Source: Iphione sp. A-MEVVRFRX5 (taxonomy: Eukaryota). From it: a stretch of 64,000 nucleotides of DNA. The notes below the pieces were generated by a model. That model was not told the origin of the DNA and did not search any database. It saw nothing but the letters and a program-made list of their open reading frames with translations. Shown in pieces: positions 1,639 to 41,180 of the stretch. The stretch is from assembly GCA_976226885.1 (NCBI GenBank), contig OZ320316.1:77066001-77130000 (forward strand), written 5' to 3'. Made by a program: the position numbers and the translations under genes. Position 1 is the stretch's first letter; every line of letters starts with the position of its first letter.

Positions 1639-3349
1639 TACATGTATGTGATTCTCCTCCTCACTGATTATCTGTCTGTGTCTCTATGTGCATGACTTTT
1701 GTGGATTAAGCCCCCTTTTCCAGGTATTTGATCTTTGTCCCGGTTGTTGTTCTGAAATGCGTGGGAATAGAGTGTCTTTGACTGGGGTGCATGATGCTAT
1801 TTAGTTTACATTTTAGTTACATTGTGCAAAGTGACCCTGGGGGCCAGGCTGATAATGGCTTGAAATCAACCTCTCATGCATCTCAGGGTTGCATCTGTAT
1901 GTGATAGATCCATCGGTTGGTTAATCAGCATCTTGCTGCTGCAGCCATTAAAACTGTTAGGAAATATGGTTAGCAGGTAGGTATGTCCTATGTACTGGTT
2001 CTTCCTGCATATCAGGGCAACACATCTGAATGCATGAATGTGTGCCACAATATTCATGGAAAACATGCCATTAGGCCATGTACACATGTATCCGTAGAAA
2101 TGAAACATGTACGGGTCTGCCGCCATGAAATACCTCCTGCAGTGTTTGTTCAAGACCCTCCTATATGTATCCCAGATGTATCTTCAACACTGTATACTAT
2201 GGGAAACGGATGGGTGTCTGTAAAAAAAATCTGTCAGCGATGGACAGAAAACAGATACGGAGCCGTATCTGTTTTGAAATGGATACATCTGAACAAAGTA
2301 GTACAATTGCTATGGTTAGGTAAAAAAGGTCAATGTGTCCGTATCCATTTTGAAAATATATGGATACATGTGTACACCGCCTTACTGCTGTAGATATAAT
2401 CTGTGTGCATATATCCATGTACCAGCTGCTGTGCAGATCACACACACAGACTACACACTTCACATAAATTCAAGCCTTGTGTGGATGAAATGATGAGCTG
2501 GCATCTATGCTTAGAAAAGTCCTAGTGGACTGATACACCATGCACGGTGGCATTATTACCCCTACCGAGATAAGTATGTTTAGAATTGGTGTAGCCTCTC
2601 AAGTGTACACATGTACACATAATTATCTCTCAAATTCACGAGGACATTGGTTCAAAGCACGCAGATTATCTCGACGCAAAAAATACCAGCTTAACGTGTA
2701 TAGCAACGCAGGTTTCCTGGCATTAACCGTGGAGGTTATCATGTTACCTATGTGGAGTAAAAAATGAAAACGAAACTGGTTATTTCCAATATGATGATTG
2801 TAATGCCAATAATTCTTCATCCAGTTCGCAAAACCGTATAAATTCTTGGCCACATTGTTATCAAAAAGGAGTCTCTTTACACCTGCTGAAGGGAGCATAG
2901 GAGGTAGACAGAAATATTTTGTTGTGGCGGTTTGCTCCACCCAAACTGAACGCATACAAAGGAACCCCGTATCGATGACCTGGTCTCGACTAGCCTTTTT
3001 TCAATGTAAACACGTCGAGTAAAAATAATTTCCCGCGCAGCCTGGAGCCACTGGTCCGCTGCGGAGTATCTCTTTGGGTAGTCGCATCTGGCACCTACTG
3101 TTTCTGTATAGCATATGTTCTACCGATAAAACAGTCACACTCACCACACTCTCATTCGTCTTATTAAAATTCTTTTGTGAAGCTAATTAATTCTCGAATC
3201 CAAGTGCATAAGCTGCCAGGATACTGGTCAGCATTGATGATGAGGGGGATATGGCTTTCCGAGATAATTTGTTGGTATCATTCAAACCAATAAGTTTAGA
3301 AAAAAAATGAGCCGTTTTTCGCGAGATGGTCTCTTATGTTTAGCAGTAC

Positions 3350-3418
3350 CTGAGTTTTACGCTGTTGAGATCTGGCGAAGTAGAGCACGTGGTAGATGAG
3401 CGCCCCCAGGTGAAACAT
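3350..3418 (-). CDS. Weak candidate alternative first coding exon MFHLGALIYHVLYFARSQQRKTQ
   Basis: First ATG after an in-frame stop, 23 codons, CAG|gtactg phase-0 donor, at the 3' end of a GC-rich island (about 3340-4300). Confidence 0.35.
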
Positions 3419-6400
3419 GCCTGAACCTCAGGCGCGCCTGGCCACTGTCGTCATTGGGGGCTGTCGGGACTCTATGGACCAGTCACCTGGGATTAGTGGC
3501 CATTGGTCAACACGCTGTGTCGTGAGTGACTGAAAGCCCGCCTGTGAGATGCCCATCTCCATTGGAGGGCCAGTTTATCCCCAACAAACATCCCGGGCGA
3601 CAACACATTGGGCGGCTCTTCAAATTGCTTTGTGTGGACAGAAAGTATTGTGGCCGCAACACTGGCTGCGACCGTTCATCCGGAACACAGGGTTAAGCTC
3701 GTCCTTCTATAGATTCGAGGCCGTATGAATCACCTCATGCCCGATGTTCGCAGACGGGGAAAACGCCGGAGATTTCACACCTGTCCGTAGATTACAGATA
3801 CCAAGCGTCGGTGGGTCTAAATTTTCGCACCGCGTCAAAGCCGCTAACGTGAATCTGGTTAGTTTAGGCCAATCACCGCACAACCGGCGTCGGACCGATC
3901 CAAGAGCAATTTGCACCTAATTCGGCACTTCGATCGCTATTACGCTTCCACCATTGCGTAAATCTACTGATAACTGCCCAATTTGTCCCCATGCTCCTTG
4001 TCCACTCATGATATATGAGTTTGGTGGCTCTCCACTTGACGGCACAAAGGTTGAGGCAAATTGACACACCAGCTCGGGATCCATCGACTTTCTCTCCAAC
4101 AGGGATCATCCCTCTTAGTTCTCTCGGCTTTAGAGCCCTGCCCAGATAAGGTCAGGTCGAGCAGATTACGGATCCAACCCACACAGCCAAACATTTTTAT
4201 CTTGTGTTGACCTAATCTTTCCGGTGAGCTCTGCTTCGCACCGTTCGCTCTGAACATTACGTGTGCACCGGCGATCTAATTGGGTTCTGATTGTGAGCTT
4301 CGGTTAAGTAGCCGCATGTACCAAACGGCATGGTTTACTGGCTTCTTTTATTAGCGTACTTGCGAAACTCATCTGACGATAACAAAATGCTGATTCTGTA
4401 TACGCATCCTAGCCGCGTCATCGTACCCTGTGATAAAGCACTAATGTGGAAAAATGCTGTGAACTACATTGTACTTGTAATTTATATCCTGTCCACCATA
4501 TGCTGAACTCGAAAAAACCTCGCCTGCCTTCTTTCTGTCGTCAACTACATACTGCACGTTTATCTATCTCCTCACCCATTCTGACATGGAGATCCACACA
4601 CTCTGTCTGTCTGTCTACATGTCTGCCCATCTGCCAGAGGTTGCAATCTCTCCGTGGTTCCGTGTCATACAGTGCATCACCATCTTTAATGATGACACAT
4701 GGTGGGTGGGGAGCGCCATCTTTCTGTATCTAATCTACCCTATTCCTAGCTACCCCACTGCTCGATAAATAACATGACACTCCCCTAAAGGCCAGCGCAT
4801 GCCGATGCCAGCTGGGCATCTCGTGTACTGCCAAGCGACTCTGCTGGGGGACGAGGTCAAAGGGACAGCCTGCATGTACACGGGAAGTAGTACGGAAGGC
4901 ATTCTGTCAAAGGGCATTGGTGATTGAGAGACTTCAGGCTGATAAACGAAAACAGTATCAAGACAAAACTGAGAACGACAGATAAGAGTGAAACCTTTTA
5001 GATCTTTACCGACAAAACCTCCTCCTCGTGGCTAGCTACCCGATAAACACATAGCGATCTAAGGGTGTTACTGAAGGTCAATGCTACTTCTCTCAATCCC
5101 TTCCTATCTTATCATTATATAGGTTATTACGTATATTTTTGGGGTAGGAACGGCGTCCGAGATGTAGATATGGTGCATGAGACGTCTACGGGATGTTTAA
5201 AAATTATTATGCATACTTCTGGCCTTCACAGCAGCGTCATTTGTACTAGGACAGCACTGTAATTACCATATTCGGTTCGTCGCCAATACAGTACACTGGC
5301 CTCAGTGTATGTCTCTAGCTTGAATTATTCCATAGGAAAATGACAAATACAAAAAATCAGTACCACAAAATCATCTGGAGCGATTATAATTTTCATTGAT
5401 GGCATTTGGGACACAGTAGCTCAGTACATCTGTGCCTTTCCAGTTGATGAACAAAGCTTGTATACATCCAACTTCTCATCCTTATTTCTTAACTTTGTAC
5501 TTTGAAGGAAAAATGGAAATTCCTAGCAAAAAAAAGAGGAATCTCTTCATGACCACTGATTTCTTTCATCATGATAGATTATTCAGTCGATTCTGCTTAA
5601 GTGGCTCGACTACGTCAAACCACCGTATCAAAGCGTACTACAGCATCCCCAGTATACATGTTTAACCGTCGAATATCAAATGTTTTATTTGCTCATCTGG
5701 CCTGTAAACAGGTGGGCGTATAGACACTGCGGGAGCATTCATCACATATGACAGCATATATGGTATCCTGGTTTCTGAGCCATATTGCTCGGATGATCTT
5801 AAGTCACATACTGAATTGACCATCATCACTCTCCAGCTCCCTATTGAGATAGACATGCACATATAGTGCAGGTCAATGTATGGATCGCCACACTGTCACT
5901 ACGTAAATGTCTGGAATTACAACAAGCTGATTGGTGTTTTTTCTATTATGATGTCACAATTAGTAAAAGTTACATCTGCGGTACCCATTTATTCAACTGT
6001 CCGCGATCCGTCCAATGAGCGATTGCTCAGAGCCTGCTACATGTACATGTATTAAATGTTCTCGCCAACTAAGCCGAATTCTGCAAATACACCTGCATAG
6101 CTACAATTGAATTAAAAAATGCAACTATTGCTTTCAGCGTAACTGCATTTTTTCCCCACGAAGAATACTTGTCGATATGTACATGCATACACATTGTATT
6201 GTTGTATGGATCTAGACGAGGCAGGATTCTGATAATACCACATGTGGGTCATACCCAGAACCTATATATTTACAACACGGTATTGCTACCTTTGTATAAA
6301 CCCCTATGAGATCAACATTATTGTGCAAACTACATCCGTATTACTACTAAAAGGATTTTAGGCTTACATATCCTGAAACCCATTCTGGTTGCTTATTTAC

Positions 6401-6852
6401 ATATACAACTTGGCATGTTCGACATGCAGCCATTGTGATTTACTGTAAAGCTATTTCAGACTCCAATATTGAAAATCTGTTCTGCTGTACTTGATTTTGT
6501 TTTGAACCATACAAAAAGGTAGCCGACCGCCTAGACATATGATCTGGAACGACAAATAGAGAAACGGAGAGCTGAGCAAGCATACCTCTGTTGTGTAACG
6601 CCACCGGGCTCAGAAGGGTCGAGATTAGCTGCACTCAAGACGTGACTTTTTATACAAAAGTACGATAGCAAGCCTACCCAACACCAAGTAAACCTATTAA
6701 GTCGACAGCCGACTGCAGTTTCAACTACCATCCGTACATCCTTCGGGGGGAGAAGCTGGTTCTCTTTGCGTTATGATAACGGAGAAATGTGACTGATACT
6801 TTGATGGGGGTCGCCTTCATACATCTCCATGTGTATATGGATGGCTTGGGGG

Positions 6853-6980
6853 TGACTCAACACCAATGGATTGTCGATTTATTCAAGTGAGTCAAACCGT
6901 ACGCGTTTAACACCTGCTGTACTCAAACTGTCATTAAGACGGACGTAGTGGGTCATAAACGTAATGCTTTGTCTGAGTCA
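6853..6980. promoter_or_regulatory. Cluster of three AP-1 consensus sites (TGA[C/G]TCA)
   Basis: TGACTCA 6853-6859, TGAGTCA 6888-6894, TGAGTCA 6974-6980. Function not shown. Confidence 0.4.
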
Positions 6981-7024
6981 GATATATATATATGTATACA
7001 TGTATATATATATATATCTATATC
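6981..7024. repeat. Interrupted (TA)n microsatellite
   Basis: gatatatatatatgtatacatgtatatatatatatatctatatc. Confidence 0.85.
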
Positions 7025-8974
7025 TCACTTTATCGTTCACCCGAACAATGGGTCCATTAGAGTAACTTGTCAAACCTATCTCAAGATAATTGTCACTCAA
7101 TGCTAGTCGAGGGGAAACTGGCACTCCAATACAGCGAAATTTGTTCAATGAAGGGCTTAGATACACTTCTCTACGCCAGATTTTAGGTCGCTAACGACCT
7201 TTCTCTGTGGACAGAACCACTCAATGGAAGGCACCGACGTACAACACATTGCGCATTATTTTGGGGGTTATAATTAGCTGTTGGAAACCTGTGCCCGAAC
7301 ATTCTCCCCCGTTGAAAATACGTTTTCAGTTAGAACCGGGCGAAGAGATTGCTGACAATCTAGCGCCATATTCGCCTCCGTCTGAACTGGAACTCTTAAA
7401 GATTGGCCATGTCGAACACTGTCCGTCTCTGTTCGCATATATCTGTCATCTTTCACACCCGGGGCAAGGTTGGGTCTAAAAGGTGCCTATTCATCACCTC
7501 ACCTGTTTGCACGCCCACACAGGCGTGTACATCGACCCTTGGTGGGCTTGATGCTCACTATGCGATTGTCACCTGTGGCTCTCTCACATTCCTGAGAAGG
7601 GGGTGTCGGGGGTGTCTCCCTAGCGAGGGTATTAACGTCAAATCCGCACATCGTCATGACCAAGCACAGATGACGGACTCGCTGTATCGGACTTTCAAAC
7701 TCGGGATCTTGGGCTCATCTTTTCTGATCCTACTGTCCCTCACTGACCCCTAGGAGCCATAGGGGCGCACAAGAAGGGTACAGAATGGACGGGCATCTGC
7801 AGCTTAAAGGTACATGTATTCTGATCGAAGACATTATCTGATGGGTGTGATTACTTTCAAAATGCCTCAAACTAATGACTACTTTAGTTGCACTTGTCCC
7901 AAAAAAAAGTCAACTATGTACCTGTGGGGCCTCTCATACATTCTGGTAGCTTTACAACCCAGTGGAATGGTGGTTGAACATGCTAGTATTTCTTGTTGGG
8001 ATTATTTAGACATTTTATGTGAATGATTTTGACACGGCAATAAAATGCCTCACAGGATCATACACCATAAATGATGATCACAGGAAACATGGTCCGTCTG
8101 AGTAGGTGGCCACAGGCCTTGCGGACTGTCGGTCTACATTCCAACGTCCTAATGCTAGATCCTGTTTCCCAACAATACTACTCGCCGACACTGATGTCAT
8201 TGAGGCGAGTGTATGAAACACCTCCCGTGACTAGGAGAAACGGTATCTCCTTCCTTCGGCGAATGCAACGGGCGTTTGCTGATAAAATTGGGAATCGAAT
8301 TTCTCATTGATTTCGTACAGACAAGTTTTATCTAAGTAAAAATGTCCTAACGTATACATGTATATGCATGTAATAACACTAAAAAAAGGTACATACACAG
8401 AAAGTTTAGGCTGGTATGACTCATCAGTCTATGTCCGTTTCATATGTTTAACTTTTTCTGAAGTAGATTGATTCTAACTTGGTTTTAGATGAGTGAGTTA
8501 TACACGGTTCGACTAGGGGGGGGGCAAACGGTATAACAGTGGGGAACAAACCTGTGTGGGTCTGTAGATAAACTACCTACAAATGTCAATCAAAAACAAT
8601 GCCATAAGCCTTCCAGTGTTGACTCTTAGTCCAATTGAATGTGGGCCTATTGTCGACCATTGGCCCAGGCCCCATGAGGGGATTACAAATGGGGTCCGGC
8701 ACAACTGGAAACGAGTGTGTTGGACAGTAAAAACAAAACGCAACCCTAGACTGTGCGCATGCACCAGCCTGTTTAGAAGGTGTGCCTGCAACAGACATTA
8801 TATCCCTACAAAATGTAAGCTTCAAGATCTACTTTCAAAGCGCAGAAACGTAACATGACGGCGTACTCTTGTAATCAACTTTACGTACACTATGTACACG
8901 TACAACTGTCTAAGTAAATACAGGTAAATATTTGTGTACACGACAAGAGGGACCTTGGCGTAAAGTGATGTTAC

Positions 8975-9079
8975 CCTTTTTTGATAGTACTCCTCTTCCT
9001 TTGGGTCGACCGGCCTGTTTCCGCCGTCACCATTGTCCTTCTTCTTTTTCTTTTTCTTTCTTCCACACCCGCAAAACAT
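8975..9079 (-). CDS. Candidate alternative first coding exon MFCGCGRKKKKKKKDNGDGGNRPVDPKEEEYYQKR (Cys plus polybasic)
   Basis: ccgtcaagATG context, 35 codons ending at AGG|gtaaca (phase 0); upstream acceptor tttcttcccctcatcag at 9161 gives an 81-nt 5' UTR portion. Confidence 0.7.
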
Positions 9080-9362
9080 CTTGACGGCGGAGAATATGTA
9101 TTATTCCTCCCTTGAAATAGCAATCTCCGTCAGTCACAGAACCTCCAACGTCATATCTGGCTGATGAGGGGAAGAAATCCCAAATCCGAAGCGCTGTAAT
9201 CGCAGCCTACATATTCCTGTAGCGGGGCGTCCGCAGCTGTCCGGTGTTACCTAGAAGTATTTCTAGGCACGACCAGTTGAGTAGCGAAGGCTACCATTGG
9301 GCCTTGTCCAAGGCGGTTCAGTTATGTGGAAGGGTGGTGGTGCTCTTCAACCGCCAGTTTAC

Positions 9363-9419
9363 CTTGAGCCCCACCTCTTGTTCCGTGATGTAACCTTCAA
9401 CGGCCTGGATTCCTTGGGG
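9363..9419 (-). CDS. Candidate 57-nt phase 0/0 exon PQGIQAVEGYITEQEVGLK
   Basis: Strong acceptor tctcttctaactttttcatcctcag, donor AAG|gtaaac, 19 open codons. Confidence 0.55.
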
Positions 9420-10372
9420 CTGAGGATGAAAAAGTTAGAAGAGACTGGCGTAATCGTTCTTGTATGTCTGCATGTGTTGGACTGAATGTGTATTGAGAGT
9501 TAGTGGCAGGATGGCCCCGTCTGGTCTGGAGTCTACTATGAATCACGCTACATAGATAGGTGGCTAGCGCCAAAAGACGAGACTCATGATATTCCAACAA
9601 ACTTGTCGGCGTGACTGAGGGTCGCGTGTAAAGTCCAGCTAGCTTCAATATGCGGTTCACATGAACTTCTTGCCCGCCACGGTCTGATGTTCAATACGGT
9701 TTCACACCGGTCTACAGTGTCTACCAACGTTCAGTGGTCCTCGGCTGGGTGACCGTGGCGTGTGTCCTGGCCAGCGGTGCACGCAGAATAAAGCAATCTG
9801 ACACTGTTCACAGTTGGAGGCCCCACCAGCTTGAAGTTGAAGCCGACCACCACAGAAAGGAAGGCGGGGACCACCGACCGGCTGACCGACTGGCTGGCCT
9901 TCCCGATGAATGGCCTGTTTGCTTACGTTAAGCTTTACCGGCCGCTCCACCCCTCCGGCTGTGCGCTGGTCCGTCAAAATATCACCCCGTGGAGGACGCT
10001 AACTGGGACGGCCCATTCCTCTCCAGTACTCTTTGTGTCGTCTCAGCTTCCGGTCCCGCAAGTCTTCCTCCCCATCGCCCGTCTAATAATCGAAAGGGGT
10101 CGGGGTGCAAGGAACTACCTCCCAGTGATGAGGTGACGGGTGACTGGGTCGCACTTAGGGTTTGTGCCGTGCTAGTTGACCGGCATAGCCTCGCCTGGCC
10201 GAGGTCGTGCTCACTAGTGGCCCCGTTATGATCATGTGTGTAGAGCAGCAGGAAGACACGGCGGCCCGGCTCTCACGCCTCCTCTGTTCGCTCACTACCC
10301 CTACGGCCTACGCACGAACGATGCTGCCGGTGAGCGTCCGACGTTACCCGACTGACCGACCTACCTACCTAC

Positions 10373-10748
10373 CTCTCTACCTGAACCTCCTCCTTCCCCA
10401 GTACCAGAGGGGAGGGGAGGATGAGGAGGATGATCAGCCGGTTCACTACACCTGTTACCTCCCCGCTCGACAAGGGCAGCAAAAGCAAACAACACACAAT
10501 CGTACGTGTCCACGGTGAGTGTTTCGGGTGCAGATCGAAATGGCAGAGTTGTGGCTGGTTGGCAGGGGGTCCTCGGCGGCCAAACTTCCCATCCCCGGCG
10601 GCCCGCCGCCAATGGAGACGCATCTGCGACTGACGAGTCGGTTCTTGAGAGTGTACGCGCTGAGGATGGTTGCTGATGCTGAGGCTGCGGGGGGGGGGGG
10701 GGGGGGCGGCTCGCCAGCAGGTCAGGCGCGGGTAGTTGGATGCTACTA
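10373..10748 (-). CDS. Candidate 376-nt Pro/Ser/Gly-rich exon, phase 2 in, phase 0 out (SSIQLPAPDLLASRPPPPPPQPQHQQ...GEGGGSGRE)
   Basis: Acceptor cctttccctcctatagcttccag, 125 open codons, donor GAG|gtaggt. The frame depends on the length of the G run at 10689-10706. Confidence 0.45.
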
Positions 10749-11016
10749 CTGGAAGCTATAGGAGGGAAAGGTGCACTATGGTTGGGATGAACATCTGCCA
10801 GGCAACTCCTCGCGGCGTGTGTCGGCCTACAGCACGCAGCCTTGTTGGCGGACTCTGTTCACTGGTTTCTGATTAGTTTTGACTGGTTCGTGCGTGCTTT
10901 ATGACCAATTGAACACACCCAGTTTAACTCCATGAAATTAAAAGAAGAATCAGCCTAAGGCGCTGTCTGTTATACTGATGCCTCGGTGCAGGGGTTATAT
11001 ATCCCTAACTTATTAC

Positions 11017-11112
11017 CCGATTTTTTTTTGTGGTCGTGAGAAATAGTTCCGTTTTGAGATGTTGCATTCTTCGTCTTCCAGCAATTCTGACAGCCGAGCC
11101 GAATCTCCGGTG
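11017..11112 (-). CDS. Candidate phase 2/2 exon (x)TGDSARLSELLEDEECNISKRNYFSRPQKKI(G)
   Basis: Acceptor ctttacgttcttttag, 96 nt, donor GG|gtaata, no stop. Confidence 0.45.
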
Positions 11113-12289
11113 CTAAAAGAACGTAAAGAATGTCCCACGCAAATATATGGCCAGAGTTTGGTACATCGGTCATCCTCCCGGTGAAATAATACACGCCGAG
11201 GTTTTGTATGATAATGTCGATGGTTCATGTATCAATGCGTCCTCTATCTGCCCAGGTACACCGGGCGACTTTCCTTCCATCATCATATTCGACTTAACTG
11301 TATCTCATGATGGCCAACGATGCCACACGTTGCAATAAAAGTGAGCCTTTTCAATGCTACGGTCCAACGATAAAAGTGTATGGTCAAAGGTCAAGGACGT
11401 CCCAGTACACCAATGACACACTGATAATTTCCCCCAGTGTAATTACCGATACCATGTACACGTATTTCAATTTACTTTCAAAGGCCCGGGCTTGTACACG
11501 TTATTAACATGGTCCGATTTTGGCAACGAATTCAAAGACAGTGATACGGACAGTTGGCTTCTAAACTCTCATACATATTAGATCCGCGTCTAACTGACGC
11601 AGCCTACACACAGTGACACTGCTATTGTATGTTTAAGGCAGTCAATTCTGTGTCAAGCGTGCATTAAAAACGCCTATAGTGCCTGGAATTATTGATCATT
11701 TCGTCATCCAGAATCCTCTTATCTTGGTGGATCAAGATCTGGCATGTGTATCCTGCAAAGATAAGCACTCCAATTTACCAGTTTTAGACGCACGTTCTTC
11801 CTTTCTGTGACATTTCTGTTAATATGAACTTCGTACGTCTAGCTCCTTCAACGACTCTATCCCACCAAGGCTTCCTAGTCACGGCCTGTTGCTTTTTGGT
11901 GTTGGTTAATGTTTCTTCTCAAATCGGCTCCTGCTGGAATCGTTTGAGTACCTGATGCAACATCATCACTCGACATCAACGTAGAAACGTCGCATAACCG
12001 ACACAAACTTGTCACTTAAACATTCGCAGCACGATGTGGACACGTGGGTATAATTCCAAGAGATACACCCAGACGTGCTAGGCTCCGCGTGAGAATATGC
12101 CATGTGACGGACCTCAGGGGCAGGTGTACCGAGGAAAGACTGGTCGACCCCTTGGTGTGTACCTGTGGATCCCCTCCTCTGGCCGGATCCCACCTGGTAT
12201 GGCGACCGTCCCACGCTTGGCAAATATGGCAACCGAGAAGGCGCTGCCTGTATAATACGGAGCGCAGAGTACGTGTATCTATGATTTAC

Positions 12290-12333
12290 CTGCGGCGATG
12301 CCGGCCTTTATGGTAATTCACCTGTGTCACCAT
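12290..12333 (-). CDS. Candidate first (or internal) exon MVTQVNYHKGRHRR-AG, phase-2 donor
   Basis: gagaagATGG context, donor CAG|gtaaat; the frame stays open upstream to 12417. Confidence 0.35.
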
Positions 12334-15244
12334 CTTCTCGCATTTGAAGATGCTCTGCTGCTTGCAACAGGCCACGTCCAGGATCCAGCTGTTCCTCACA
12401 GGGAACAAAGTTCCAAGTCATCAAGGGACTAACTGCAATCACTGCTACTGCAAGTTTTACACCAGGACAGCGGTTAACTTAACGTTGCCTCGTGTATGTA
12501 CTTATCAGATTTCACCAGCTGCAAATCTGCAAGCAATTAAAGCATAAGCAAACAGCTTTCAAGTGCTGATTCTTCTATTAGCACGGAGTGCGTGCCGAAC
12601 CGTTCGGTTTGTGCCTCTTAAATGGCATTCGGCTATGAACAGAGCTTGTTTGTTGAGCATGAGGCCATTCATAACAGACCTGTCGGTGACTCGACGACCG
12701 CACAGCTACGGAGGTTATGTGTCTTTGCCGGCTACGTCTGCTGACGCACGGATAAAATACCCGTACATCCCCACACTGCCACCGCCCTCCGCACCTGTGA
12801 CACAAGTACCACCACCAAGCCCTGAAACAGGGCATTCAATCCAAATGGCATGCTTCGATGAATCTGGCGTTTAAACACAAAGTCAAAATGTGGCTATGCA
12901 GGTATAAAAAAATTAGCCAAGGTGATTTTTTCCCGCCAAAGAAGAGGAATTCGCCCATAAGAAAGAACAGATAGTACTTGAAGAAACCTGAATTTGCTAC
13001 GACGAAAAACAGCTGGGATTCTGAGCAATGAAAATGAGTTAAGCTTATGTTACAATATACATACCAAGATACAGAAAACGTGTTTTTGGCAGATACTATT
13101 TCCCTAGTTGTCATTTTACTTTTTCTATTGATAAATACTTCACACTATGCTCCACCAACTATTTCCAACTCCCTCTAGTTAATCCCAGTTAAAAGGTGCA
13201 GATTCACGTATATCACCGTATCTATAATAATACTAATGCTCAAAAGATACCACTGACAGGAACACAATAGCAGGGGTCAATAGAGATAAACTATAAAAGT
13301 GAATAAGTGTACGTAATGCTCGAGGTGACATTTATTGTCTGCCTGACTCCTGCCAAACGTTCACTGTACGCTCACTTATAGAGCGACATCATTCTTGCGA
13401 CAAGTGGACCATGGAGACGCTATTCGTTGTGCGCCAAAAGAGAAACTTGCCGTCATGTTTCTGTGCGTTTGCGTGTGTGTGCATGTATACGTACGGTCGT
13501 CTTCATGTGCATGCACATGACAATGTCGTGTAACATGGCGTGGAAATTAAGGTGTGAATAAGTACACGCCTTATAAACACCTGGTCCATTTTTTTATTTG
13601 CTTCCAATTAATCAATTTTCGGATATTACGGAGCACGTAACCCTGAGTGGTGTGATTAGGCTCCTTCCAAAATCTATCAAGAGATGATGAATTATTACAC
13701 ATAATGAAGTAAATGAAACATATCCTCTGGGAACTTTAGCACTAAATTTTTGTCCTGTAAGATAAAAGGAAGGACAATGACTAATGTATTTATCTCCCTA
13801 AAACGGCAGGTAAAAACATGCATCTTTCACCAACGATGTCAGAGGAGTCACATCTGCCAAACAGCTTTCAGAAAACTTGCTTAGTTTTTAACAGGGTGTG
13901 CGCTCTGACTTCAGTCGTTTACCTGCACTAAATTTTAGAGATGTTAGTGGTGGGTACACTATACATGTAATCTATTCTTGCAACCATCACCTGCATTTAC
14001 AAATGTACTGTCGAAAGAATTAGTTTGTATCCTTGTTTTTTTAGTCCAAGGTGGAAATGTTAAGTCAAAAAGAACTGAAACTGAAGTCAAAGACAGAAAG
14101 TAATACATCAGTAAAGTCCAAACATCTGAATAAACATGCACGTTTAATATTTAAATCGCAAAATAAAAAAATCAGCGTGAAATTAATATAGTAAAGGTAA
14201 TATTGGGTACAGTCAGATAAGAAGGGTTTAGCTACCGTACTGTTCCCTCACTCTCACTGTTACTTTATCAGAGAAATGGACTAAGCCTACACTAAACTAA
14301 CGTTCAGCTCTTTAACCCAAGGGCATGAGAGACATTTGCTTTCAGCGCAAAATACACCTTTGGCATATATATAAAAAAAATCTGAGCAGAAGTGCTTGTT
14401 ACATAATCTTTTCGGCGGTCCTTAATAAATTATGCATCATCTTGTCACATAAAGCATTACTAGTGGAATTTGGACAGAATCCAAATCTGTTAGCAAGTCT
14501 GATTATTTCTATTCACCTGTCCACTAATGCTCCTGAAGAATGAAACACTATGTACGAATCTCTGCCCCAGGTCATAGGTTGATATCAAACCTTACCAGAG
14601 ATCACTCATAGAATAGTCTAGTTTTTCACTCTCTAGACTTGGATTTATTGCGATATCTTTCTAAGGACACCATTTTTATACTTATGTCCTTCGCGTACTA
14701 AAACGCGACCGAGCCCTGCCCTTTCAGTCTAGCTACAAAAGATTAATTACAGTAGGGTACTGAGGGGCTCGAGAGAGTGACGCGTGAGTAGAATATATCA
14801 TCCAGCTATCTATTTGCAATATTTTTTTACACGTAGTCGCCCCTTAACTGGGCCCATGTAGTAGTTCCATTCTTATTGGACCTGCGCCCAAGGAAGGAGC
14901 GACGAACGAGCGACGAACGGGAGACGAAGTGCTACCCTTGCTGCCGCCTTGTGCTATGAAAAGGTATTAACCTTTTTGCATTGCCAACACACATATGCAT
15001 CCTGCCACACTTTGACATTCAGAGTCCGTGTCGAATAAACAGTATCGAACTACTTTCCCTCGACGTTAAAGCACACCAATAGGAGAGTATATCACATGTA
15101 CTTCAAGTGTGGGGCAAAAGCAATAAAGCATAATTCCCCTCCCCCCGTAAAAAAGGGAACCTATGAAAACGAATGGATCTAGGTTTAAAGATACAAAGTA
15201 TGTCCAAAATTAAAAGTACATGTATGTACTTCAATACACACCAC

Positions 15245-15514
15245 CTCGTGTTGGCTTTGAGAAGGTGACGGGGCCGAAGCCGTGGCTCCAAGGTCGCCTT
15301 CATCCTCTTCTTCGATTACTGCCTCGATACGTCCTCCCGTTGACGGCTCAGGGACTTTCTGCTGGCTGGCCTGCTCTAGACGGGCTCGTCTGCTCCGCTG
15401 GCTCCGGGGATAGATCTTCCTCTTTTCTAGCGGTTCATGCTGAGGCAAACCGTAGCGCGTAGTGCCTAACACCCGTCTTAGAAAGCTCCGGATGCGTTCA
15501 TCGGTATTGCTCAT
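15245..15514 (-). CDS. Candidate alternative first coding exon, about 90 aa MSNTDERIRSFLRRVLG...SPSQSQHE
   Basis: GC-rich ORF that turns intron-like after GAG|gtggtg (or GTG|gtgtgt 3 nt later); both donors are phase 0 but weak. Confidence 0.6.
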
Positions 15515-18500
15515 CCTAACGGCACCGATTCCAGCATTTTACTGCATGGGTTTGGGTGGCGGGTTTACACGTATGTGGTACACGATTATGAATTATGTTT
15601 GGTCTTGACTGAATCCAGTACATGTAAATTGATCACTGCAATGTTCAGGTCACACAACTTGGGCTCATCCTTGGAAAAAGATACATTTCTTGCTGTCATG
15701 TTCGGAGATATATATGCATATTGCTAGTTTTTTTTTACCAGAAGATATCACCCGTCATTCAAACGCAACCAGATCAGTTCGGCTTAGCTCTGACACTGAT
15801 ATACTGTGCTTTCCGTGCACTCGTGGCTGGTAAGCCACTGATCCCGACAATTCATCCTCTGCGGGGATCGTTCGATAGGGATGACCTGTTTAGTTGTGTC
15901 ATTCCCGAAGCCTCGCTGCTGACATATTGTTGGCTTGCGTACCTGCCACTTCAACGTGGTGTTCCCTTTTTAAGACTTTAAATGCATTACGTGGATGTGT
16001 GTGCCCAAACTCGTAGCGGGGGGCCTCTTACGATGAGCCCGGAGTCCATCCAAACATACGTGAGTAATATTTGCGGACGAGGAGCAAAGGTGTGCTGTCC
16101 AGGTACGGCGCATCACACATCACATGCGTATCACTACATGACTTGTTGCTTTGACTCCCACAGGGAAATGACGAAGGTGGACGACACAGAGCACGAGATG
16201 TACGCTATTGCACAGTGGAGTGGACCTTGTAACCTGAGGCTACAGCTAGGATATCATACATTAACTGCGTATAATTACTAGACATGTCACTATATATATA
16301 CTCTGTGCTGCTATGGATTAATTAATCAATTTCACATGGTACACTGTAAAGTTGGGTGACGTCGACACTCATATTATCCATATACAATATACATGTACTT
16401 TCAGAATGGACAGAACTGCTACATCATAATTGATTTTCTACAAAAGTTTATATCTCATCTTCTCAGCTGATGTTTATAGGCAGGTGTATATTATGTACTT
16501 AAATCATCAAGGCCACTATATTGATTCACACGGCTTTTCGAGCTATGCCTATGTGCGAGAGACACACTAGGTAAACATGGTTAGGGACATAAAAAGGTGA
16601 GTCAACGTGTAAGCTGGTGCCTATGGCTCTAAGTGGCACATCTACCCAACAGCTACGGTAAACAGGCTCTCCAAATCACGACAATACCGACGGTATATAT
16701 AAATCGGTCAGATTCTACGAAAATGTAGACGTGTTGGACACTTTAACACGCCGGCCCGCTTGCCATTCCGCTCGTCTCACGAACCCCTTTAAGTCACCTT
16801 TTCTACATCCAAACACATGTATATTGTACGCCTGTACGTGCTGTCCTCGTTCTACGAGCGGTTTCTTCCTGTCTGAGTTCTGCCAATCAGCTATGTGTCC
16901 ATGCGTTCCTGGTCGGGGAACGACCCGGAGATCCTCTTATTAATTCAGTTTCGTACAATATTATTCTCCACTGGTCATCTTCAATTCTCGCTCATGTTTC
17001 TGTGGGTACAAGTGCGTGTCGTGAATATGATCTCCACGTATAGGTTGGTTATCACCACCGCGTAATGCCATCATTAAAAGGAGATTAGACACCCCGGGCG
17101 AATGTATAAATGGCTTGCCTGAACGCTTTCGATGAAGACCAGAGCCTTGGCTCGAGGCTGAACTATGTCTAATAAAGTCGACTTCGACTTATGCACTTGA
17201 TGGGGGGGCATCGGCGGTGGGTGTCACAATCTTCGAACAACTGTCTGAGTGGTGCACCACCGGTGCCACAACGCACAGACCCTTCCACTGGCCACCACCT
17301 GCACCACTTGCACCACCAAGTAAACATTTCCTTCTCAGGGACCAACTCAGTGGCATGGCTGCACTGGGGATGGGGCAAAGTTGAAGTGATAGAATAATAT
17401 CTGGGCTTAGTGATTCATATCAGCTGACTTATCTGACAATGGATAACACTACATTTGGTCGCCGACATTCAAAGTGAACATTGCATCAAATCAAGTACCT
17501 CTCCTTATCTTTCCATGTCAAGTATTTCCCTTCGGTGATACGGTCCCATGCGTAGCTTGTCTTTGAGTGTCCATAGATGTTCCCATGCGGAAAAAAACAC
17601 GTAAAATGGCACTTTAAGTGAGAGACACCATTTCTTGAAGGGCCACTTGTAAAAGCTAAATGGTAAGTGATCGCACAATGCCAAAAGCAGGTCACTACAG
17701 TAGCCATTGAGCCCCATTGAGCGTTGGATTTGTGATAATCGCTTTTTTTTCTGGGAGGCATTGTGGGAAAAAAATATAATTGCTAACAAATAAGTAAAGG
17801 GTTAGCAGACTGTGTGATGAACATACAGTTATACATGTAAACAAGATGATCCCTTAAAGCTGAAGAATGAATGCAAAGTATATATATACATTTTACCTTC
17901 AACAACGATGCTGGTGTGATCAGAAAAAGCGGAATAATGTGTTTTCATGATTTGTGGGCAACAAAAATGCCTGAAGACAAAACACCAGAAAATGCATCAC
18001 AAAATCTGACTCTTTCCCCTGACGAACAAGTACAAAGACAAAGCTGTGCTCGTGTAGTGAACAAATAAAGCCGTGGGTGATCGGGACGAGTCAGGAACAA
18101 AACAGTATCGCCCCCTTTACCCAACAAAGAGAACTATACCTCGGGCGGAACCCAAGCCCTGAGCGAAGTGCACGAAAACTGGAAAATAATAAAGGATAAG
18201 ACATTGTAAAATATAAACAAAACAAATAATATTCATTAAAAGAACGATTCAATCATTAAAGGAAACATGTAATTAATGGCATTTCACGCTTGGAAATGAA
18301 GGACATTGTGACAAATATTTAGAGGAATTTGCATGGAAATTCCATATCACAGTACATGTACACTGTAATACACACACTGATATTTTGTTTATACATTGAC
18401 AACAGAGTACACCTTCGAGGTGTATTGTCCCCTGCCAGCCATTCAATCAACTGCAACTAATTAGTTCTGGCTGGGTGAGCAGACTGGGACACAGCTCCAC

Positions 18501-19983
18501 GCCTGTGCAGTCCAATAGGATTCCTATGGTCTATGGCTGAATTTTTCAAAGTGCATGTGTTCACAGCAATGGTGCAATGTTTTCAGCATGCCTTTTGGGC
18601 TGTAGTGCTAACAGTGGGATGATTTCCTTAGGCATGTGTTTTCATGGCATTGGAAACATGCCACCACAGCAATGTTTTTAGAGTGGGAACTTTCTCATTT
18701 TTCACAACACCACAGCTGTTTTCACTGTGTTTTGGGTCACATGTCTGTTTTTGTATACAAGTAAATGCCTGAAGCCCTCCTCCATGTAGTGTGTTTGACA
18801 GCCATCATGTGTTTTTAGCGCCACACAGATACAATTGGCTCTGACCAACTCTGATCAAATCTGGCCAGGCAATAAAGGGTCCCAGTAATGTTACTTTGGA
18901 ATCCTGCTGTGAATATTTTAAAAAAGCTCCTAAAACGAAGGCTTTATTATGTCTCTTACAAATTACTTTACATTACTTACTTACATTCCTGCTTGTACAT
19001 TACATTTTCTTACAAAATCTGGTGTCTACAGACCAGAATCCACTACTGAGGAAACTGTGCGAGTGAATTCTTTCCCAGGCATCGCGTCTGATAAGAAGAG
19101 GGGAGTATATTTCCATATTAAAGTTCTGAGATGTAATTATGAAATACATACAAGGTGAGATGTAATTATGCGAGACATAACTGATACATACAAGGCGAGA
19201 TGTAATTGTAAATAATTGTAAGATATTATAACATAAAAGTTGAGATAAAGCTGTATAAGTCAAAAAAACCAATATGGCATCTGGAAAACATCTGATGAAA
19301 ACATCCTGTATGCTAATTGTGACCCCCTATCAGCCATATAAGGGAAAACATGGTCGTGTTTCCATGGTGCACATGATAAACACAACGGTGGAAACACAGC
19401 CAAAGGACGAGGTAATCCCCTGAAGGGGAAAAAACAGATGTGGAAACACATGGCAAGAAAAAACGCACCCCTAAGGTAATTCAGACTACATAAAGATTTC
19501 TTCTTTTTTATATCAAAATCATTTCAAATAACATATAAACAACCCAGTACGAAGTACCCATGTAGTGTAATAATACATATATTTAATAAAAATTCAGCTC
19601 ATTAGACAACCATTTTACCATTATAGGAAACATGAAATTGTGACGAAAGATTGAACAGCAGCATTCCTAGGTCCCCAACCTCTCTGAGGCTGAGGAGGCA
19701 GGGGACAAAAAAAACTTTATCTTAAAATAGCAATGTTCCGTCGATCCCTGGAAATAACTGTGCACAATTGAGCAGCGTCAGCTGTTACCACTGGAAATGA
19801 TGTAACTGAACTGGAGAACGTAAGGCTGGTGTACCATCCGAGTAGGCCATAACAAAAACCCATGTATCCCCACCAGTACACCATGTACATGTATGTACGC
19901 ACATGAGAACCTATGAGGATACTTGCCAGGTTTTCCTGTTTAATTCTACATGATGTACCTAAGATAATCTCCGCTGTACTTAC

Positions 19984-20091
19984 TCGATGATGGTGATTCT
20001 TGCAGCGGATTGGGAAACAGAAAATGAGACAGAGGATGATTGAAGCAAATACGAGGGCCGTAAGGACATCGATAGTGTCTGCACTCAGCAT
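19984..20091 (-). CDS. Candidate alternative first coding exon with signal-anchor/TM segment MLSADTIDVLTALVFASIILCLIFCFPIRCKNHHHR
   Basis: ATG in gtctccATG context, 36 codons ending at CGA|gtaagt (phase 0); 18-residue hydrophobic stretch followed by basic/His residues. Confidence 0.62.
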
Positions 20092-23000
20092 GGAGACTGT
20101 TCTCAGTACATGTATACATGTACATGCAGAGAGATATCCACTTGACAGAACGAGGTGAGCGTGCTTTGGCGCTTTCAATTAGGTCCAGGAATTGTCTGCC
20201 AACCGCCTTAACGCACCATACGTCCATGGTCACGTGCGTTATTTCCATCCATACTTTTCACCTGACTGGACTCAGGCCACGTGTGTTAACCTTCGTTAAG
20301 TTATATTATTGATGCCGGTGCGGGTGGTGACCTAACGCATCTTGACACGCCCACCGGGATCAGCGATAGTGAACGCCATCCCACATACATATATCTATAT
20401 GTATACAGATGATAATGAGGTACAGACGATCCCGCTCGGGTTGCCAAGCTCAGCACACCTGTTGGTCCGATCCTGCTCGTGGTTGCGTCAAGTTATACTC
20501 GACGTAAGGGGCCCCTAGCCGGTGAAAAGGAGAGGGGGGCCCTCTCTCGTCCCTGACAACTTGTGTAAGCTGTTGAGGTACTAATCACTCACTGTTTAGT
20601 GAGAATCAGATCAGCCGCTCGCCCGTGGATCAGCGATAAGGACCGGCCAGCGTTCGGACCGAATGTCTGAGGTATTTTCGTCTTGTAAACGATAGCTCGG
20701 TTCGACCAAGCTCCAGCGGTCCTACAACACATTAAGCCGGGGGTAACCGTTCAGAGGACCGGTTCATGTAGTCTTCGATCTCGACTCATCCTTGTTATGA
20801 AAGGCCTTTTGTATATCGGCGGCATCTAGCAGTTTGGCGGTCACTTCTTCCTGAAATATCTATGCGTACTTTGATCCCAGTATTACACGTGCATGTCTGG
20901 CGCTGACAACCGGTTTGTTTGGCCCGTGGCGTGCCTGGTACCAAATTCAACACGTGTAGTGTTCATCACATTCCATACTGATATCCTTAAAGGCGAAGCC
21001 GCAAACAACAATGAAAACTGCCACAGTGCTCAGGGTTCCTTCAGAAAGCAGTAGAAAAGCAAAGCTGGCCCTCAGTAGGGCTTGTACGGTACGTTACTCG
21101 AAGCGTAAAGGTTCTATATAAGCAACGGCAGTTGCGTCCTCTTGCACCCAGCTGTCAACAGAATCAATACAATCCGGCGCGGCGGTTTTATATATGGGCA
21201 CAATACCTCTGTAGGTATGCTCGTAAAGCCGGACGTATTTTACATATAAAAAGACAGCCTAGAGAACCAATTTTATTGTGAGAGAACGGTGCTGAGGGTA
21301 CTCTGTGGATGCACAACATAAGTAGGACTACTTACAGTGGTTTGACTTGCTAGACATCAACGAGGCCTGAAGTACTTAATAATTCTTTTCAGAAACACCC
21401 AAAGTTTCAAATGATTTTAAGACAATTGGCTGCACTATGTAAATGGAAGGATAGGTATGTGTCCAAGGTGGAAAATAGGAATATTTTTAAAGAGAAAGGG
21501 GATTGGTTATTACCTAGGACACATCGATTTGAAGATTTGCCTTGGGCCGTAAACATTGACACTGCACTTGGTATTAAGCGCATCCCGTTGCATGCTTGCT
21601 ACATCAGACCAATTGTGTATTCTCGGCCACTCATTATGTTAGTGCGTTCTTGGGAATCTTTCCAGCTCCATTATACACGCCATCCTGTATTTGTCTGGGA
21701 GTATAATGTAGGTCAAGAACAATCAACGAAAATATTAACTCGAGTCTTCTGTATATTTGTAGCTTAACCCTACTGCTGCCTATAATATAAATGCACTTCG
21801 GGACATCTTATTGACCTAAATTTCGAGTATGAGCAATAGAGAAAGTATAATCCCTTATTTTTCAACAGCTGGTAACTACATGTACATTGTATTTGTATTG
21901 ACATGCACTTTAGAGAGGTGTTGCTACCAGAACTAGCAAGTAGGTCCATTCCTTGCTTTTTGTTTCCGATGGTGCAGTGTTCTAGTATCAGGGCGAAGGA
22001 CTCACAGCTCCCCTCTTTTTGTGGCAGCTACCACAGTTCCCACTCACAGAAAACATCTATCCTACCCTACTTTCGCGCACGCCTTCACTATCAGACCTAC
22101 TTGTACTATAAAGTAAATACCATTTTTTCTCCCTACAGATCAACAGCTATTTGATTTGTACGCATTCTAAAAGATAAGGTACGTGCTAAATGCATATGAA
22201 TTATGTGTGTAAAAATGCACGACAATATGAACAACTAGCTGAGGATAATTTGCTGATGTATCCAGAGTGGATGCCTAGCAGGCACCGGGCACAACTACTT
22301 CCAAAGAAAATGAAATGTTGTTTATAATGGTCGCTGCTAGTTCCCTTTCACTCTATCAAATATGAAAGACCAACACTATAGTTTTCACATATAAAACAAA
22401 TTGTTGGCGGTCAGACTTTTTTAATACAAGGCGCTGCATAGAGGGTAAGGGCACTGTTAAGATAGTGTAATTTTTGTTTACTTTTCAATGGATACCGAAA
22501 AATACGTTATTCTGTACACACAACCAACTTAATGACACTTTTCAAGGTCAATGGCTGATAATATAGAGGCCTGCTCTGAAATAAGCTCGTTTACAGGTTC
22601 TAGACGTGGTTAGCAAAAATGATGCTAACCAGAGCAATATGAGCATAGAGTCTCGAACAAAATACTGAGCGATGTTTAGAGTAGTGAACCTACTGCTGTG
22701 CTAAAAAGCAGGTAAACACCGGGATTGTTCTTGACTGGCCATATGATGCACAGCAGCATCGGCCAGCGCCAGACAACAACAAACCCCACGTACATCTATA
22801 TTCAAGAAGGGTAACATTCAACGAGAGCAACACATACGTACATGCACGTATGTACCTACATGTGTACTTCTGATTTTTCATGTTGACTTTGGAAGAAGCA
22901 CATGTAGCCACTATACGAAGTGGAAATTTATCAGATGTCTCAGTTTGGTTGCAGCCTGGTTTACACACATGTACATGGACACTGTACATGCACTCTGAAA

Positions 23001-25285
23001 TTTAACGCTAATTATTATTTTGGGCAAATACAAACCATTACAAATACTAAAAGGTGATTCAAAGTATGATCAACATTCTTGGGACGGTGCGTTCAACAGT
23101 GTGTCGTGCCTTAATATTCAATTCCCCAAATGAATCGATACCAACAACTATTCCTAAAAGTTTTCAATGGAAAGTTACTTAAATGCTCCTTTACACTACG
23201 AGATAGGAATCTTTTGAAGCCCTACTGGCTTAAAATAAAACAGCAGTCCCTGGAGGTAACTCTACCTAGCCGGTCCGAGCTTTCTGCACATATCCTGCTA
23301 AGGTGTCTGGGAGTATATTATACTGTTAACTACAGCCAGATGTCACGACCAAAGTGGAAACTGCTGCCACCTGCTTTTATGTAGGTAGGTACTACTCCGA
23401 TGTTCTATTAATATTCACTAACACGACACAACTATATAGGAGGCCTAAGAAAAGCCACTTCAGATATTTCAGAACGAAAGCTAATTTCAGACATTGTTTG
23501 TCGATCCTACAAATGGCCTTACAATTTTCATGGATATTTCTTTCAAAATATGTTAATCGTTCTGACAGTAGGCCATGTCGTGCAGAGTGTCTTCTATCAT
23601 TAAAATCTCAGTAGTAGAAAGGTCAAGGGTTTCCTGTCTGGCAGCTGACACGGCGATCTACCAGTTGTTCTCTACCTTGGTTATGTTGATATGGCGACCA
23701 CCTTCCACTGCCTTACGGCTACACGATATAAATGCATTATACGACATGGAGAAAGTTTCTCCTATAACATACCTACAAGAATGACATATTTGTACAAGGC
23801 GTTCGCTCTTGTCTGTAAAACGGTAACATTAAGCCTTAGCCTTTTCTACTGGTAAACTAAGTTTTTTTTCTAAAAAGTTGTGGCCATACAGTTGCTGAGA
23901 GACCATGTGCAGAACCACCCTCACATTCTGAAGTGTAGCGCCACACAAGTTTTGAGGCCATCGGTTTTCTATTTGGACGGTGCCAGTTGCACTTGTTGCC
24001 TATATATATATTCCCTTTGCATGGCGCTCCCTCGAAAATCCTTTATGCATTCTTTTTGGTTTGTGCATAAAATGCGCTGTAGAAACTCTAGCTAGGAACA
24101 CACTGATCAGTATGGAGAAGTATACAGAATTACAGGCAGATACCACGATGCCAGCAACTTTTGGTTCTTGCCACATCGTTCTGGTCTGTTGAAAGTAGTT
24201 TCTACTTGAAAATATTCTGTCCAAGCCACGTTGTTAGCTGTTCAACCGATGTCTTTATAACGTATTTTGTCCACTGTATTCGAATGTTTTATTCAGCTCT
24301 GTGCATCATGAATCTTTGCACTGGAATCACTGGTCCACATTTGGTCGGTCTTGGTTCGCTCTCCTGTTTTTAGTGGCAGGTTTCGTTTAAGGAGTCCAGA
24401 ACGTCGAAATAAACCAACGTGTATCTGTACAAACGGATGATTGCCCAAGGACAAAATATGGATATAAATTCAACGTGTACATGTACGATGTATACAACTA
24501 CATGTACTGATTTCGAATGGCATCACGGTTAGTGATATTTTTCGTAGCAAAGAACATGTAATGAATGCATTCATTATGCATCCCTTGGTGAAATGAATAT
24601 CTACATGTTAAATATGATCATCATGGCATCTGGCCAGGTGCGGGCCCCCTAAAAAGAAGACACATCTGATAGTTTTCAAGTGTCCAGCGGCTGGGTCACA
24701 CATATGGTAAATTGTACGGTCTGAATTTTGGTTAACATGACTTCGTCACGCCTCCACCCGAAAGGAAAACAAGTCTCCTCACCAAAGTGAGATGGGTAAC
24801 TCCATGTTGGGGATCGGTCTAGTAGGTGTATATGTACATGCATACACTTCTTTTGCCGGTCACCAGTGGTAATGAACTGTTGATGCATCTGTGGCAGTTG
24901 TCACATGTGACGCTTCCTCGTTCTAAAGGACATGTGGTATATAAACGCTGGGCCCTCTGGCTCCACTTGAGGAGATGCAAGATTGAATGGCCCCAACGTC
25001 TGTAGGTCCTTGAAAAATACGTGCTTGAAACCGAACCAGAGTCAACCGGCCGTGCGGTGTGCTTTTATATCGTTTTTTTGATACAGATTTCATAAAAGTT
25101 GAAGTCTGGTTCATTGGCAAGTTGTTGATCTGAAAACCACACGGTCTGTTTCACATACAGTACATTCAAACCATACATCAACATTGCAGACATAGTTCAG
25201 GGAAACACGCAGTCAATCAATACATTTATTATCCCCTTGCCTAAAATTTCAAGTCCATTACCGCCTCGCATATTTTCTTACTTAC

Positions 25286-25591
25286 AAAGGACAAGTCGAC
25301 GCGCGAAGGACTTGCTCGTGTCGGTCTTGAGCTCGTCGTGGTGGTCGTCGTCTCGTAGAGCGCCGACCGGCCGCCGGGGCCGACGAACGGGCTGGTGCGC
25401 ACCGGGCTCTCATGCCGCTCGAACACAATGCTGCGTTCCGGCGTACGGCGCGTAACAATGCGCAGCGGCCGCGACACATGCTCATAGGTGATCTGACGTT
25501 GGCGCGGACGCTGGCGGAAGGGCGACGTGAGGAACTCACGCGGCTCGTAGACCACCTGGCTAGAATGATGCTTGGCCGAGATCAGAGGCAT
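25286..25591 (-). CDS. Candidate alternative first coding exon, 102 aa MPLISAKHHSSQVVYEPREF...SPSRVDLSF
   Basis: ATG in GCTACCATG context, 306-nt GC-rich ORF ending exactly at TTT|gtaagt (phase 0). Confidence 0.7.
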
Positions 25592-40959: not shown

Positions 40960-41180
40960 CTGGATTACGGGGATAAAAAGGCCGCGTTGTTCGGATTATC
41001 GTCTTAAGCTTTGGGTAATTTTGCTAGGAAAGGTTTATATTGCACAGCCTGTCTTATGACGTTTAATCACATTGTAGTTTGTTATTTGATGTTCAGACCT
41101 TTTTCACAATGGGACCAAAAATGGGTATACCGCAGGGAATTCATTTTGATGGCATTTCGTCTCGTAGCAGGATTTTTTTT

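Follow-up and report, generated by a model that had tools for sequence, protein, structure and literature searches.

How many alternative N-termini can one spectraplakin gene launch from a single intron? This question is raised by a 64,000-nucleotide (nt) stretch of DNA from Iphione sp. A-MEVVRFRX5 (NCBI GenBank assembly GCA_976226885.1, contig OZ320316.1, positions 77,066,001 to 77,130,000 of the forward strand), which is referred to here as the window and whose positions are counted from its first letter. An earlier note on this DNA had interpreted five open frames, located in the intron between the exons for the two calponin-homology (CH) domains CH1 and CH2, as a battery of first exons supplying "address labels" to isoforms that lack CH1. 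Our analysis makes it fairly likely that this intron holds at least two real and conserved alternative first coding exons for CH1-less isoforms, designated here exon A and exon B; the five-exon address-label battery is unproven.

As judged from its exon content, the minus strand of the window is the 5' part of a spectraplakin gene of the Shot/MACF1/dystonin type. It carries four CH1 exons, which encode the N-terminal CH actin-binding domain and include the LVNIR... end of CH1. The first three (about 63032-62958, with 21 protein letters, 32372-32289 and 32060-31980) were located by tblastn with the CH-domain fragments P0010 and P0034 and by blastn and tblastx comparison to relatives. The last CH1 exon (30227-30135; 93 nt, 31 residues) forms the upstream border of the CH1-CH2 intron. 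Its translation and splice context confirm the earlier reading that it ends in phase 0, and its other end is in phase 0 as well. An exhaustive profile-free search with this exon recovered near-identical annelid and mollusc proteins with best identities of up to 97-100%, among them KAK2194134.1 of the annelid Ridgeia piscesae (97%) and proteins of oysters and pearl oysters (94-97%); the best CH1 matches come from annelid and mollusc proteins with CH domains, some of which are labelled plectin or CH domain-containing. Because of this near-identity, the host is to be regarded as a lophotrochozoan, and most likely as an annelid. No CH2 exon was found by tblastn with CH-domain fragments in positions 1-3400. 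Consequently, everything in the window below position 30135 belongs to the CH1-CH2 intron, which is thus longer than 30 kb, and the acceptor common to any first exons within it lies outside the window.

The best supported of the candidates is exon A (25591-25286, minus strand), which encodes 102 codons rich in arginine, serine and threonine around the core motif TYEHVSRPLRIVTRR. It opens in a Kozak-like context (ACCATGC) and ends in phase 0 at the donor GTAAGTAAG, with TTT on the exon side of the junction and GTAAGT on the intron side. An in-frame TGA lies six codons before the ATG, with no phase-0 AG in between; exon A can therefore be a first coding exon only, and not an internal cassette. 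A further signal is found immediately upstream. The ATG-free run that ends at the start codon of exon A measures 625 nt and is the longest of the entire 64-kb minus strand, where the gaps between ATGs average 47 nt and reach 229 nt at the 99th percentile. Against six to eight ATGs expected in the leader, none is present, a count of zero that was not reached in any of 2000 dinucleotide-preserving shuffles, and ATG is the most depleted trinucleotide of this segment. The leader falls into the strongest CpG island of the window (25592-26342, minus strand; GC content 0.58, ratio of observed to expected CpG 0.95, rising to 1.37 over 25201-25600), which we take to hold the putative promoter of exon A and its 5' leader. 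Its sense strand is free of ATG from 26213 to 25592, and over the island 6 ATGs on the sense strand compare with 18 on the antisense strand. Codon periodicity points in the same direction, as the period-3 signal of segment 25336-25605 ranks third among approximately 4,200 sliding windows (chi-square 25.1). The G+C excess at third codon positions (GC3) places exon A among the five highest of 128 long stretches, where it is not an outlier, and we have not counted it as evidence. A search of a collection of 5.8 billion proteins with the exon A peptide returned no match among proteins of 56-178 amino acids (aa). 

Further support comes from orthologous loci that were fetched via the CH1 exon. They comprise assembly GCA_029980185.1 (L001, L007 and L008, with the ENA scaffolds L002 and L009; referred to as the L001 species), Ridgeia piscesae (L010), the Logan contig L011, the ENA record L013, and the ENA records L012 and L014. 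All of these relatives are distant from the species of the window; L011 and L013 are close to Ridgeia, and L012 is a distant and AT-rich relative. In all relatives examined, the introns inside CH1 measure just 0.2-0.6 kb and the one that follows the last CH1 exon more than 19 kb. The gene body of Ridgeia is strongly depleted in CpG, except for one island 6-8 kb after CH1 that holds an annotated coding piece. Homologues of this piece (the MFRYTR exon, L010:20014-20379) are present in L011, L013 and L012 (L012:10001), and all of them start with methionine. In these relatives the exon follows the last CH1 exon at a distance of 6.6-7.6 kb; in the window, exon A follows it at 4.5 kb. Over the first 60 codons, Ridgeia and L011 differ with a ratio of nonsynonymous to synonymous differences per site (pN/pS) of 0.24 at a pS of 0.64, their protein conservation starts exactly at GCCATG, and stop codons lie upstream of it in two species. 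Because of the purifying pN/pS value, the conservation from the start codon onward and the upstream stops, sequence comparison identifies the exon shared by Ridgeia, L011, L013 and L012 as a genuine conserved first coding exon.

To this annelid family of first exons, exon A probably belongs, and it does so at a homologous position. It shares with the family two collinear blocks, R-Q-R-[PC]-R-[QH]-R and [IT]-Y-[DE]-x-VSRP-[LM]-x-[IV]-V-x-x-RR, which are followed by a tail rich in serine, threonine and proline and by a phase-0 donor a few residues past an SPS motif. When the 2,918 stretches from the six-frame translation of the window were ranked with a profile of the four relatives' sequences, the frame of exon A came first (E 0.043). 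The hhalign comparison of exon A with the family gave a P value of 0.0019, and tblastn of exon A to L012 reached an E value of 6e-4 without composition correction. Together with the signals within the window, this makes it quite probable that exon A is real.

Exon B (9079-8975, minus strand) is a much shorter unit of 35 codons that begins with MFCGCG and eight lysines, continues with an acidic stretch and ends in phase 0; its start context is AAGATGT, and its donor reads AGG in the exon and GTAACA in the intron. The peptide of the window, MFCGCGRKKKKKKK, has a counterpart, MFCGCAPRKRHRK, that begins at a sense-strand ATG at L012:15121. The first 16 nt of the two exons are identical, although the intron around them does not align. 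Among 8,268 ATGs on both strands of the window and of the relatives' sequences, just two open an MFCGC peptide, namely those at 9079 and at L012:15121, and both are found on the sense strand of the CH1-CH2 intron. The two peptides are reciprocal best matches (E 0.003 and 0.019), and the chance of an MFCGC start on one strand of the L012 intron, as estimated from base composition, is approximately 3e-4. Both peptides combine cysteines at positions 3 and 5 with a basic run and carry no signal peptide, features of a palmitoylation anchor, and the N-terminus of exon B is consequently predicted to be a membrane anchor of the dual-cysteine and polybasic type. Upstream of exon B lies a GC-rich island (9155-10898, minus strand; GC content 0.57) that may serve as its promoter and leader and that contains 13 ATGs on the sense strand versus 28 on the antisense strand (p 0.03). 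With these data in hand, we consider exon B probably real, with a confidence slightly below that for exon A.

The gene order in one relative agrees with that of the window. In L012 and L014, CH1 (L012:3300-3392) is followed by the exon A homologue (10001), the MFCGC exon (15121) and CH2 (L014:~16767); in the window, exon A likewise precedes exon B, and both lie on the same strand downstream of the last CH1 exon. The first CH2 exon of L014 has the acceptor ttacag followed by GTATCAGAT and is in phase 0. From this exon and from the CH1 exon of the window, the donors of exons A and B appear to be phase-compatible with the CH2 acceptor.

Several points weigh against this interpretation. The case for both exons is built from genomic sequence and its conservation. 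The CH2 exon of the window species lies outside the window, so that the phase match is derived from the CH1 exon and from L014. Exon A bears a weak resemblance to the family, as reflected in a composition-corrected BLASTP E value of 3, an hhalign probability of 14% and the above-mentioned profile E value of 0.043. The match of exon B is 13 residues long and is present in one relative only; its counterpart was not found in the recovered intron parts of Ridgeia, L013 and the L001 species. Moreover, exon B is preceded by ATGs at 75, 133 and 218 nt, and its period-3 signal is not significant. Of the wider comparisons, that with the L001 species (GCA_029980185.1) revealed neither CH2 nor a counterpart of any of the candidates in the 30 kb downstream of CH1, and tblastx of the whole relatives' sequences against the window recovered the CH1 exons alone.

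What, then, of the five frames from which the proposal of a battery had started? The five minus-strand ATG frames that run into phase-0 GT donors are present exactly at the coordinates and with the lengths originally given. As the signature of an array, however, this pattern fails, since such frames occur at chance level and are commoner on the antisense strand: in the 30-kb part of the intron, 17 ATG frames reach an in-phase GT on the sense strand versus 29 on the antisense strand. These counts apply minima of 4 bits for the donor score and 20 codons for the frame, with scores taken from a simple position matrix that is approximate and suitable for ranking only. Open reading frames (ORFs) of at least 100 aa are equally frequent on both strands. 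In large introns, the criterion of an ATG frame that runs into an in-phase GT does not discriminate; the signals that did so here are the depletion of ATG on the sense strand upstream of a start and the position-matched comparison with distant relatives. The spacing of the frames by about 5-6 kb holds, and it does so because five GC/CpG-rich islands (3371-4236, 9155-10898, 15201-16174, 20238-21092 and 25276-26342) are spaced by about 5-5.6 kb, with each frame sitting at or just downstream of one of them. Long frames are to be expected in such islands on either strand, because GC-rich DNA contains fewer stop codons. In a self-comparison, the five islands share no sequence and are thus neither copies of each other nor of one transposon. 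The 34 kb upstream of the last CH1 exon contain only two such islands. Pfam searches with the five candidate peptides and with the island ORFs gave no match.

The remaining three candidates fare unequally. Candidate exon C (20091-19984, minus strand; 36 codons, phase 0) ends at the donor GTAAGTACA, with CGA in the exon and GTAAGT in the intron, and its peptide combines a short acidic N-terminus with a 20-residue hydrophobic segment followed by RCKNHHHR. This design of a hydrophobic N-terminus, a basic flank and a phase-0 GT is rare by chance; it occurs twice in about 195 kb, both times on the sense strand of the window and never on an antisense strand, in a scan whose criteria were set after the peptide had been seen. 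Its start context is poor, with a T at position -3; ATGs precede it at 20, 28 and 34 nt, and it shows no period-3 signal, its frame being too short to inform. No homologue was found in the fully recovered L012 intron or in the other relatives; a match of its peptide at L012:9260 was rejected, as it lacks a start codon, falls in AT-rich DNA and does not fit the order of the exons. We regard exon C as doubtful. Candidate exon D (15514-15245 or 15242, minus strand; 90 or 91 codons, first basic and then acidic, phase 0) has weak donors (GTGGTG at 15245, GTGTGT at 15242), upstream ATGs at 23 and 33 nt, no period-3 signal over 270 nt (chi-square 4.6, p 0.59) and no homologue in any relative examined; it is quite unlikely to be real. 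An upstream frame of 8 codons (ATGCTGGAATCGGTGCCGTTAGGATGA; 15491-15514, minus strand), whose TGA overlaps the ATG at 15514 (ATGA), may be due to chance. For candidate exon E (3418-3350, minus strand; 23 hydrophobic codons, phase 0, with CAG before and GTACTG after the junction), the sole point in favour is the adjacent island 3371-4236, at the edge of which it sits. Its upstream ATGs lie at 36 and 85 nt, the relatives contain no homologue, a frame so short is uninformative with respect to period 3, and its being an exon is very improbable. In all four candidates other than exon A, the nearest upstream ATG is found at 20-75 nt. Nothing sets the frames at 20091, 15514 and 3418 apart from those that GC-rich DNA yields by chance.

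The codon-conservation comparison proposed in the earlier note, here run on distant relatives, yielded a weak but position-matched result for the frame at 25591, a match for that at 9079, and none for those at 20091, 15514 and 3418. Its idea that several CH1-less first exons reside in the CH1-CH2 intron is thus sustained by cross-species conservation for the first two and not for the other three; a five-member battery is not borne out, as the frames at 15514 and 3418 carry no signal beyond chance and that at 20091 has an unusual design as its one signal. A more modest array would be an expansion, in this lineage, of the single CH2-only start of spectraplakins. It would contain at least three units of promoter and first exon, encoding an R/S/T-rich lead, a reverse signal-anchor, a dual-cysteine polybasic lead and possibly others, that would send a crosslinker impaired in actin binding to different membranes and of which two would be at least as old as an ancestor shared with siboglinid-like annelids. 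We consider such an array unlikely.

Two further readings are, to our minds, improbable to a similar degree. In the first, all five frames are used as first exons, each with a promoter of its own, and form a five-member array for CH2-only isoforms. The regular association of the frames with five unrelated islands, their shared phase and the conservation of two of them in relatives speak for it, as does the topology of the peptide from 20091, which is rare and sensible, because the hydrophobic segment and its basic flank would leave the rest of the protein in the cytosol. It is at odds with the larger number of such frames on the antisense strand, with the missing codon periodicity and weak donors of the frame at 15514, with the ATGs 20-36 nt upstream of the frames at 20091, 15514 and 3418, and with the failure of these three to turn up in the other relatives or in the L012 species, whose 19-kb intron is complete.

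In the second reading, exons A and B do serve as coding first exons, though for separate transcripts without CH2, representing either a nested gene or short CH-less products that end within the intron. This could account for KAK2194134.1 (P0011; L010:10001-21994), the sole annotated model that contains the Ridgeia homologue, since this model joins it to further intronic pieces and ends at 284 aa. It would also fit the intron of the L001 species, where a sense ORF of 1,068 aa demonstrates that other coding sequence has room in this place. The Ridgeia model, however, consists of three CH1 exons, a read-through intron, the conserved internal first exon with a phase-1 donor and one more piece, and this fusion has the look of two transcript classes wrongly joined by automatic annotation. 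In addition, the exons keep their orientation, order and phase-0 donors with respect to both CH1 and CH2, and Shot, MACF1 and dystonin are known to have CH2-only isoforms that start in the CH1-CH2 intron (PMC3352950; bioRxiv 10.1101/122010).

Least probable of all is the reading that no frame is coding and that regulatory elements of the intron or non-coding promoters make up the islands, with the frames as by-products of GC content and the similarities due to chance or to conserved non-coding DNA: ORF lengths, GC3 excess and donor strengths within the background of the window, the non-significant composition-corrected BLASTP result of exon A versus P0153 and the lack of a resembling protein of similar length would suit it, but it has to contend with the protein-level purifying selection and conserved start codon of the siboglinid exon, with the first rank of the exon A frame against the family at a homologous position, with an ATG desert that is strand-specific and ends exactly at the exon A start codon, and with the recurrence of MFCGC.

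The reading that we prefer, two conserved first exons for CH1-less isoforms, lends itself to a simple model. Each of the two islands would act as an internal promoter, with the exon placed at the downstream edge of the island. Exon A or exon B would then be spliced in phase 0 to the first CH2 exon, skipping CH1, and the products would be CH2-only isoforms with different N-termini, similar to the Shot C-type and to the type-3 isoforms of MACF1 and dystonin. Because CH2 alone binds actin poorly, these isoforms should depend on their lead for localisation. The lead of exon B might be anchored through S-acylation of Cys3 and Cys5 together with electrostatic binding of its eight lysines to acidic membranes. 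That of exon A would provide a basic, probably disordered chain rich in serine, threonine and proline with one conserved hydrophobic-basic motif, Y-x-x-VSRP-[LM]-x-x-V-x-x-RR.

Starts of this kind have precedents. In Shot (C-type), MACF1 (MACF1a3) and dystonin (BPAG1; isoform a3), an internal promoter and a first coding exon between CH1 and CH2 provide a lead of its own to a protein that contains CH2 only; CH2 alone binds actin poorly, and for flies and mammals the reviews mention a single CH2-only start in each gene (PMC3352950; bioRxiv 10.1101/122010). The lead of dystonin-a3 carries a myristoylation motif and possibly a palmitoylation motif (PMC3352950; bioRxiv 10.1101/122010). The slot between CH1 and CH2 is shared with the locus studied here, and this likeness is one of position. 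In contrast to the single start per gene in these systems, we find at least two distinct first exons whose order is kept in a distant relative, and, unlike dystonin-a3, the lead of exon B possesses no Gly2 and cannot be myristoylated. A CH2-only start in the CH1-CH2 intron is therefore already known; the presence of two conserved and chemically different ones in the same slot is not described in these reviews and is new in relation to them. For BPAG1a2 (dystonin-a2), an N-terminal transmembrane lead has been reported (PMC3352950). Candidate exon C resembles it in encoding an N-terminal membrane-spanning anchor; the lead of dystonin-a2 precedes CH1 and CH2, whereas that of exon C would precede CH2 only and is not conserved in the relatives examined.

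Other proteins offer parallels in design. Plectin possesses an array of about a dozen first exons, demonstrated by cDNAs, that have their own promoters and a common downstream exon and are located upstream of the whole actin-binding domain; their leads direct one cytolinker to different sites. The likeness consists in several first exons with different leads. Here, in contrast, they lie between CH1 and CH2, and two members are supported, by genome sequence. PSD-95 (MDCLCIV...) and GAP-43 (MLCCMRR...) have N-terminal cysteines at positions 3 and 5 or 3 and 4, contain no Gly2 and are anchored to membranes in a palmitoyl-dependent manner. With them, exon B shares a short motif, Cys3 and Cys5 after Met1 next to basic residues, and no homology; its lipidation is a prediction.

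Actin, microtubules and membranes are linked by spectraplakins, whose N-terminal leads set where each isoform acts. Should the two exons hold up, two conserved and chemically different CH2-only leads would mark the CH1-CH2 intron as an evolvable slot for targeting peptides, and one of these leads would be a probable lipid anchor without a myristoyl glycine. Y-x-x-VSRP and MFCGC followed by basic residues would then be short, conserved and testable motifs.

The introns of the relatives hold additional features. In the L001 species, the 1,068-codon sense ORF begins with an ATG (L008:10286-13492, plus strand, identical to L009:4408-7614) and lies approximately 19 kb past the last CH1 exon and before CH2; it is acidic and repetitive with GDPGQAEVT units, shows no similarity to the window and may represent either a nested gene or an alternative first exon of giant size. 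In L013, a retrotransposon of the long interspersed nuclear element (LINE) type with endonuclease and reverse transcriptase domains (L013:12099-15141, plus strand) is inserted in the CH1-CH2 intron just downstream of the conserved first exon. The AT-rich intron of L012 is full of long triplet and dinucleotide microsatellites (for example at L012:10759-11650 and 15799-17020), and L012 ORFs of 240-410 codons that had been called as genes were dismissed as microsatellite artefacts, consisting as they do of S/T, L or Y repeats.

Outside the CH1-CH2 intron, the intron between the first and the second CH1 exon of the window contains a 187-codon ATG frame (48769-48209, minus strand) with a hydrophobic N-terminus (MSLRSVPLVILFTCIFLTAFVS) followed by a basic part. 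It overlaps the strongest period-3 signal of the window (48451-48720, chi-square 32) and a second open frame (48701-48426); Pfam gave no match for it, the contig collection does not contain it, and the relatives have no homologue. Scans of the window for Rfam families, tRNAs and tandem repeats detected nothing relevant, and runs of N occupy 46295-46435 and 61921-62083. The sole repeat pair inside the window is inverted (41179-41482 and 63147-63418; about 300 nt, 80% identical) and is probably a short interspersed element. Finally, the sole strong GC/CpG island of the upstream 34 kb (43570-43994; GC content 0.56, observed-to-expected CpG ratio 1.0) bears a 185-codon open stretch on the sense strand (44162-43608, minus strand) without a Pfam match, and the two together may represent another internal promoter or exon.

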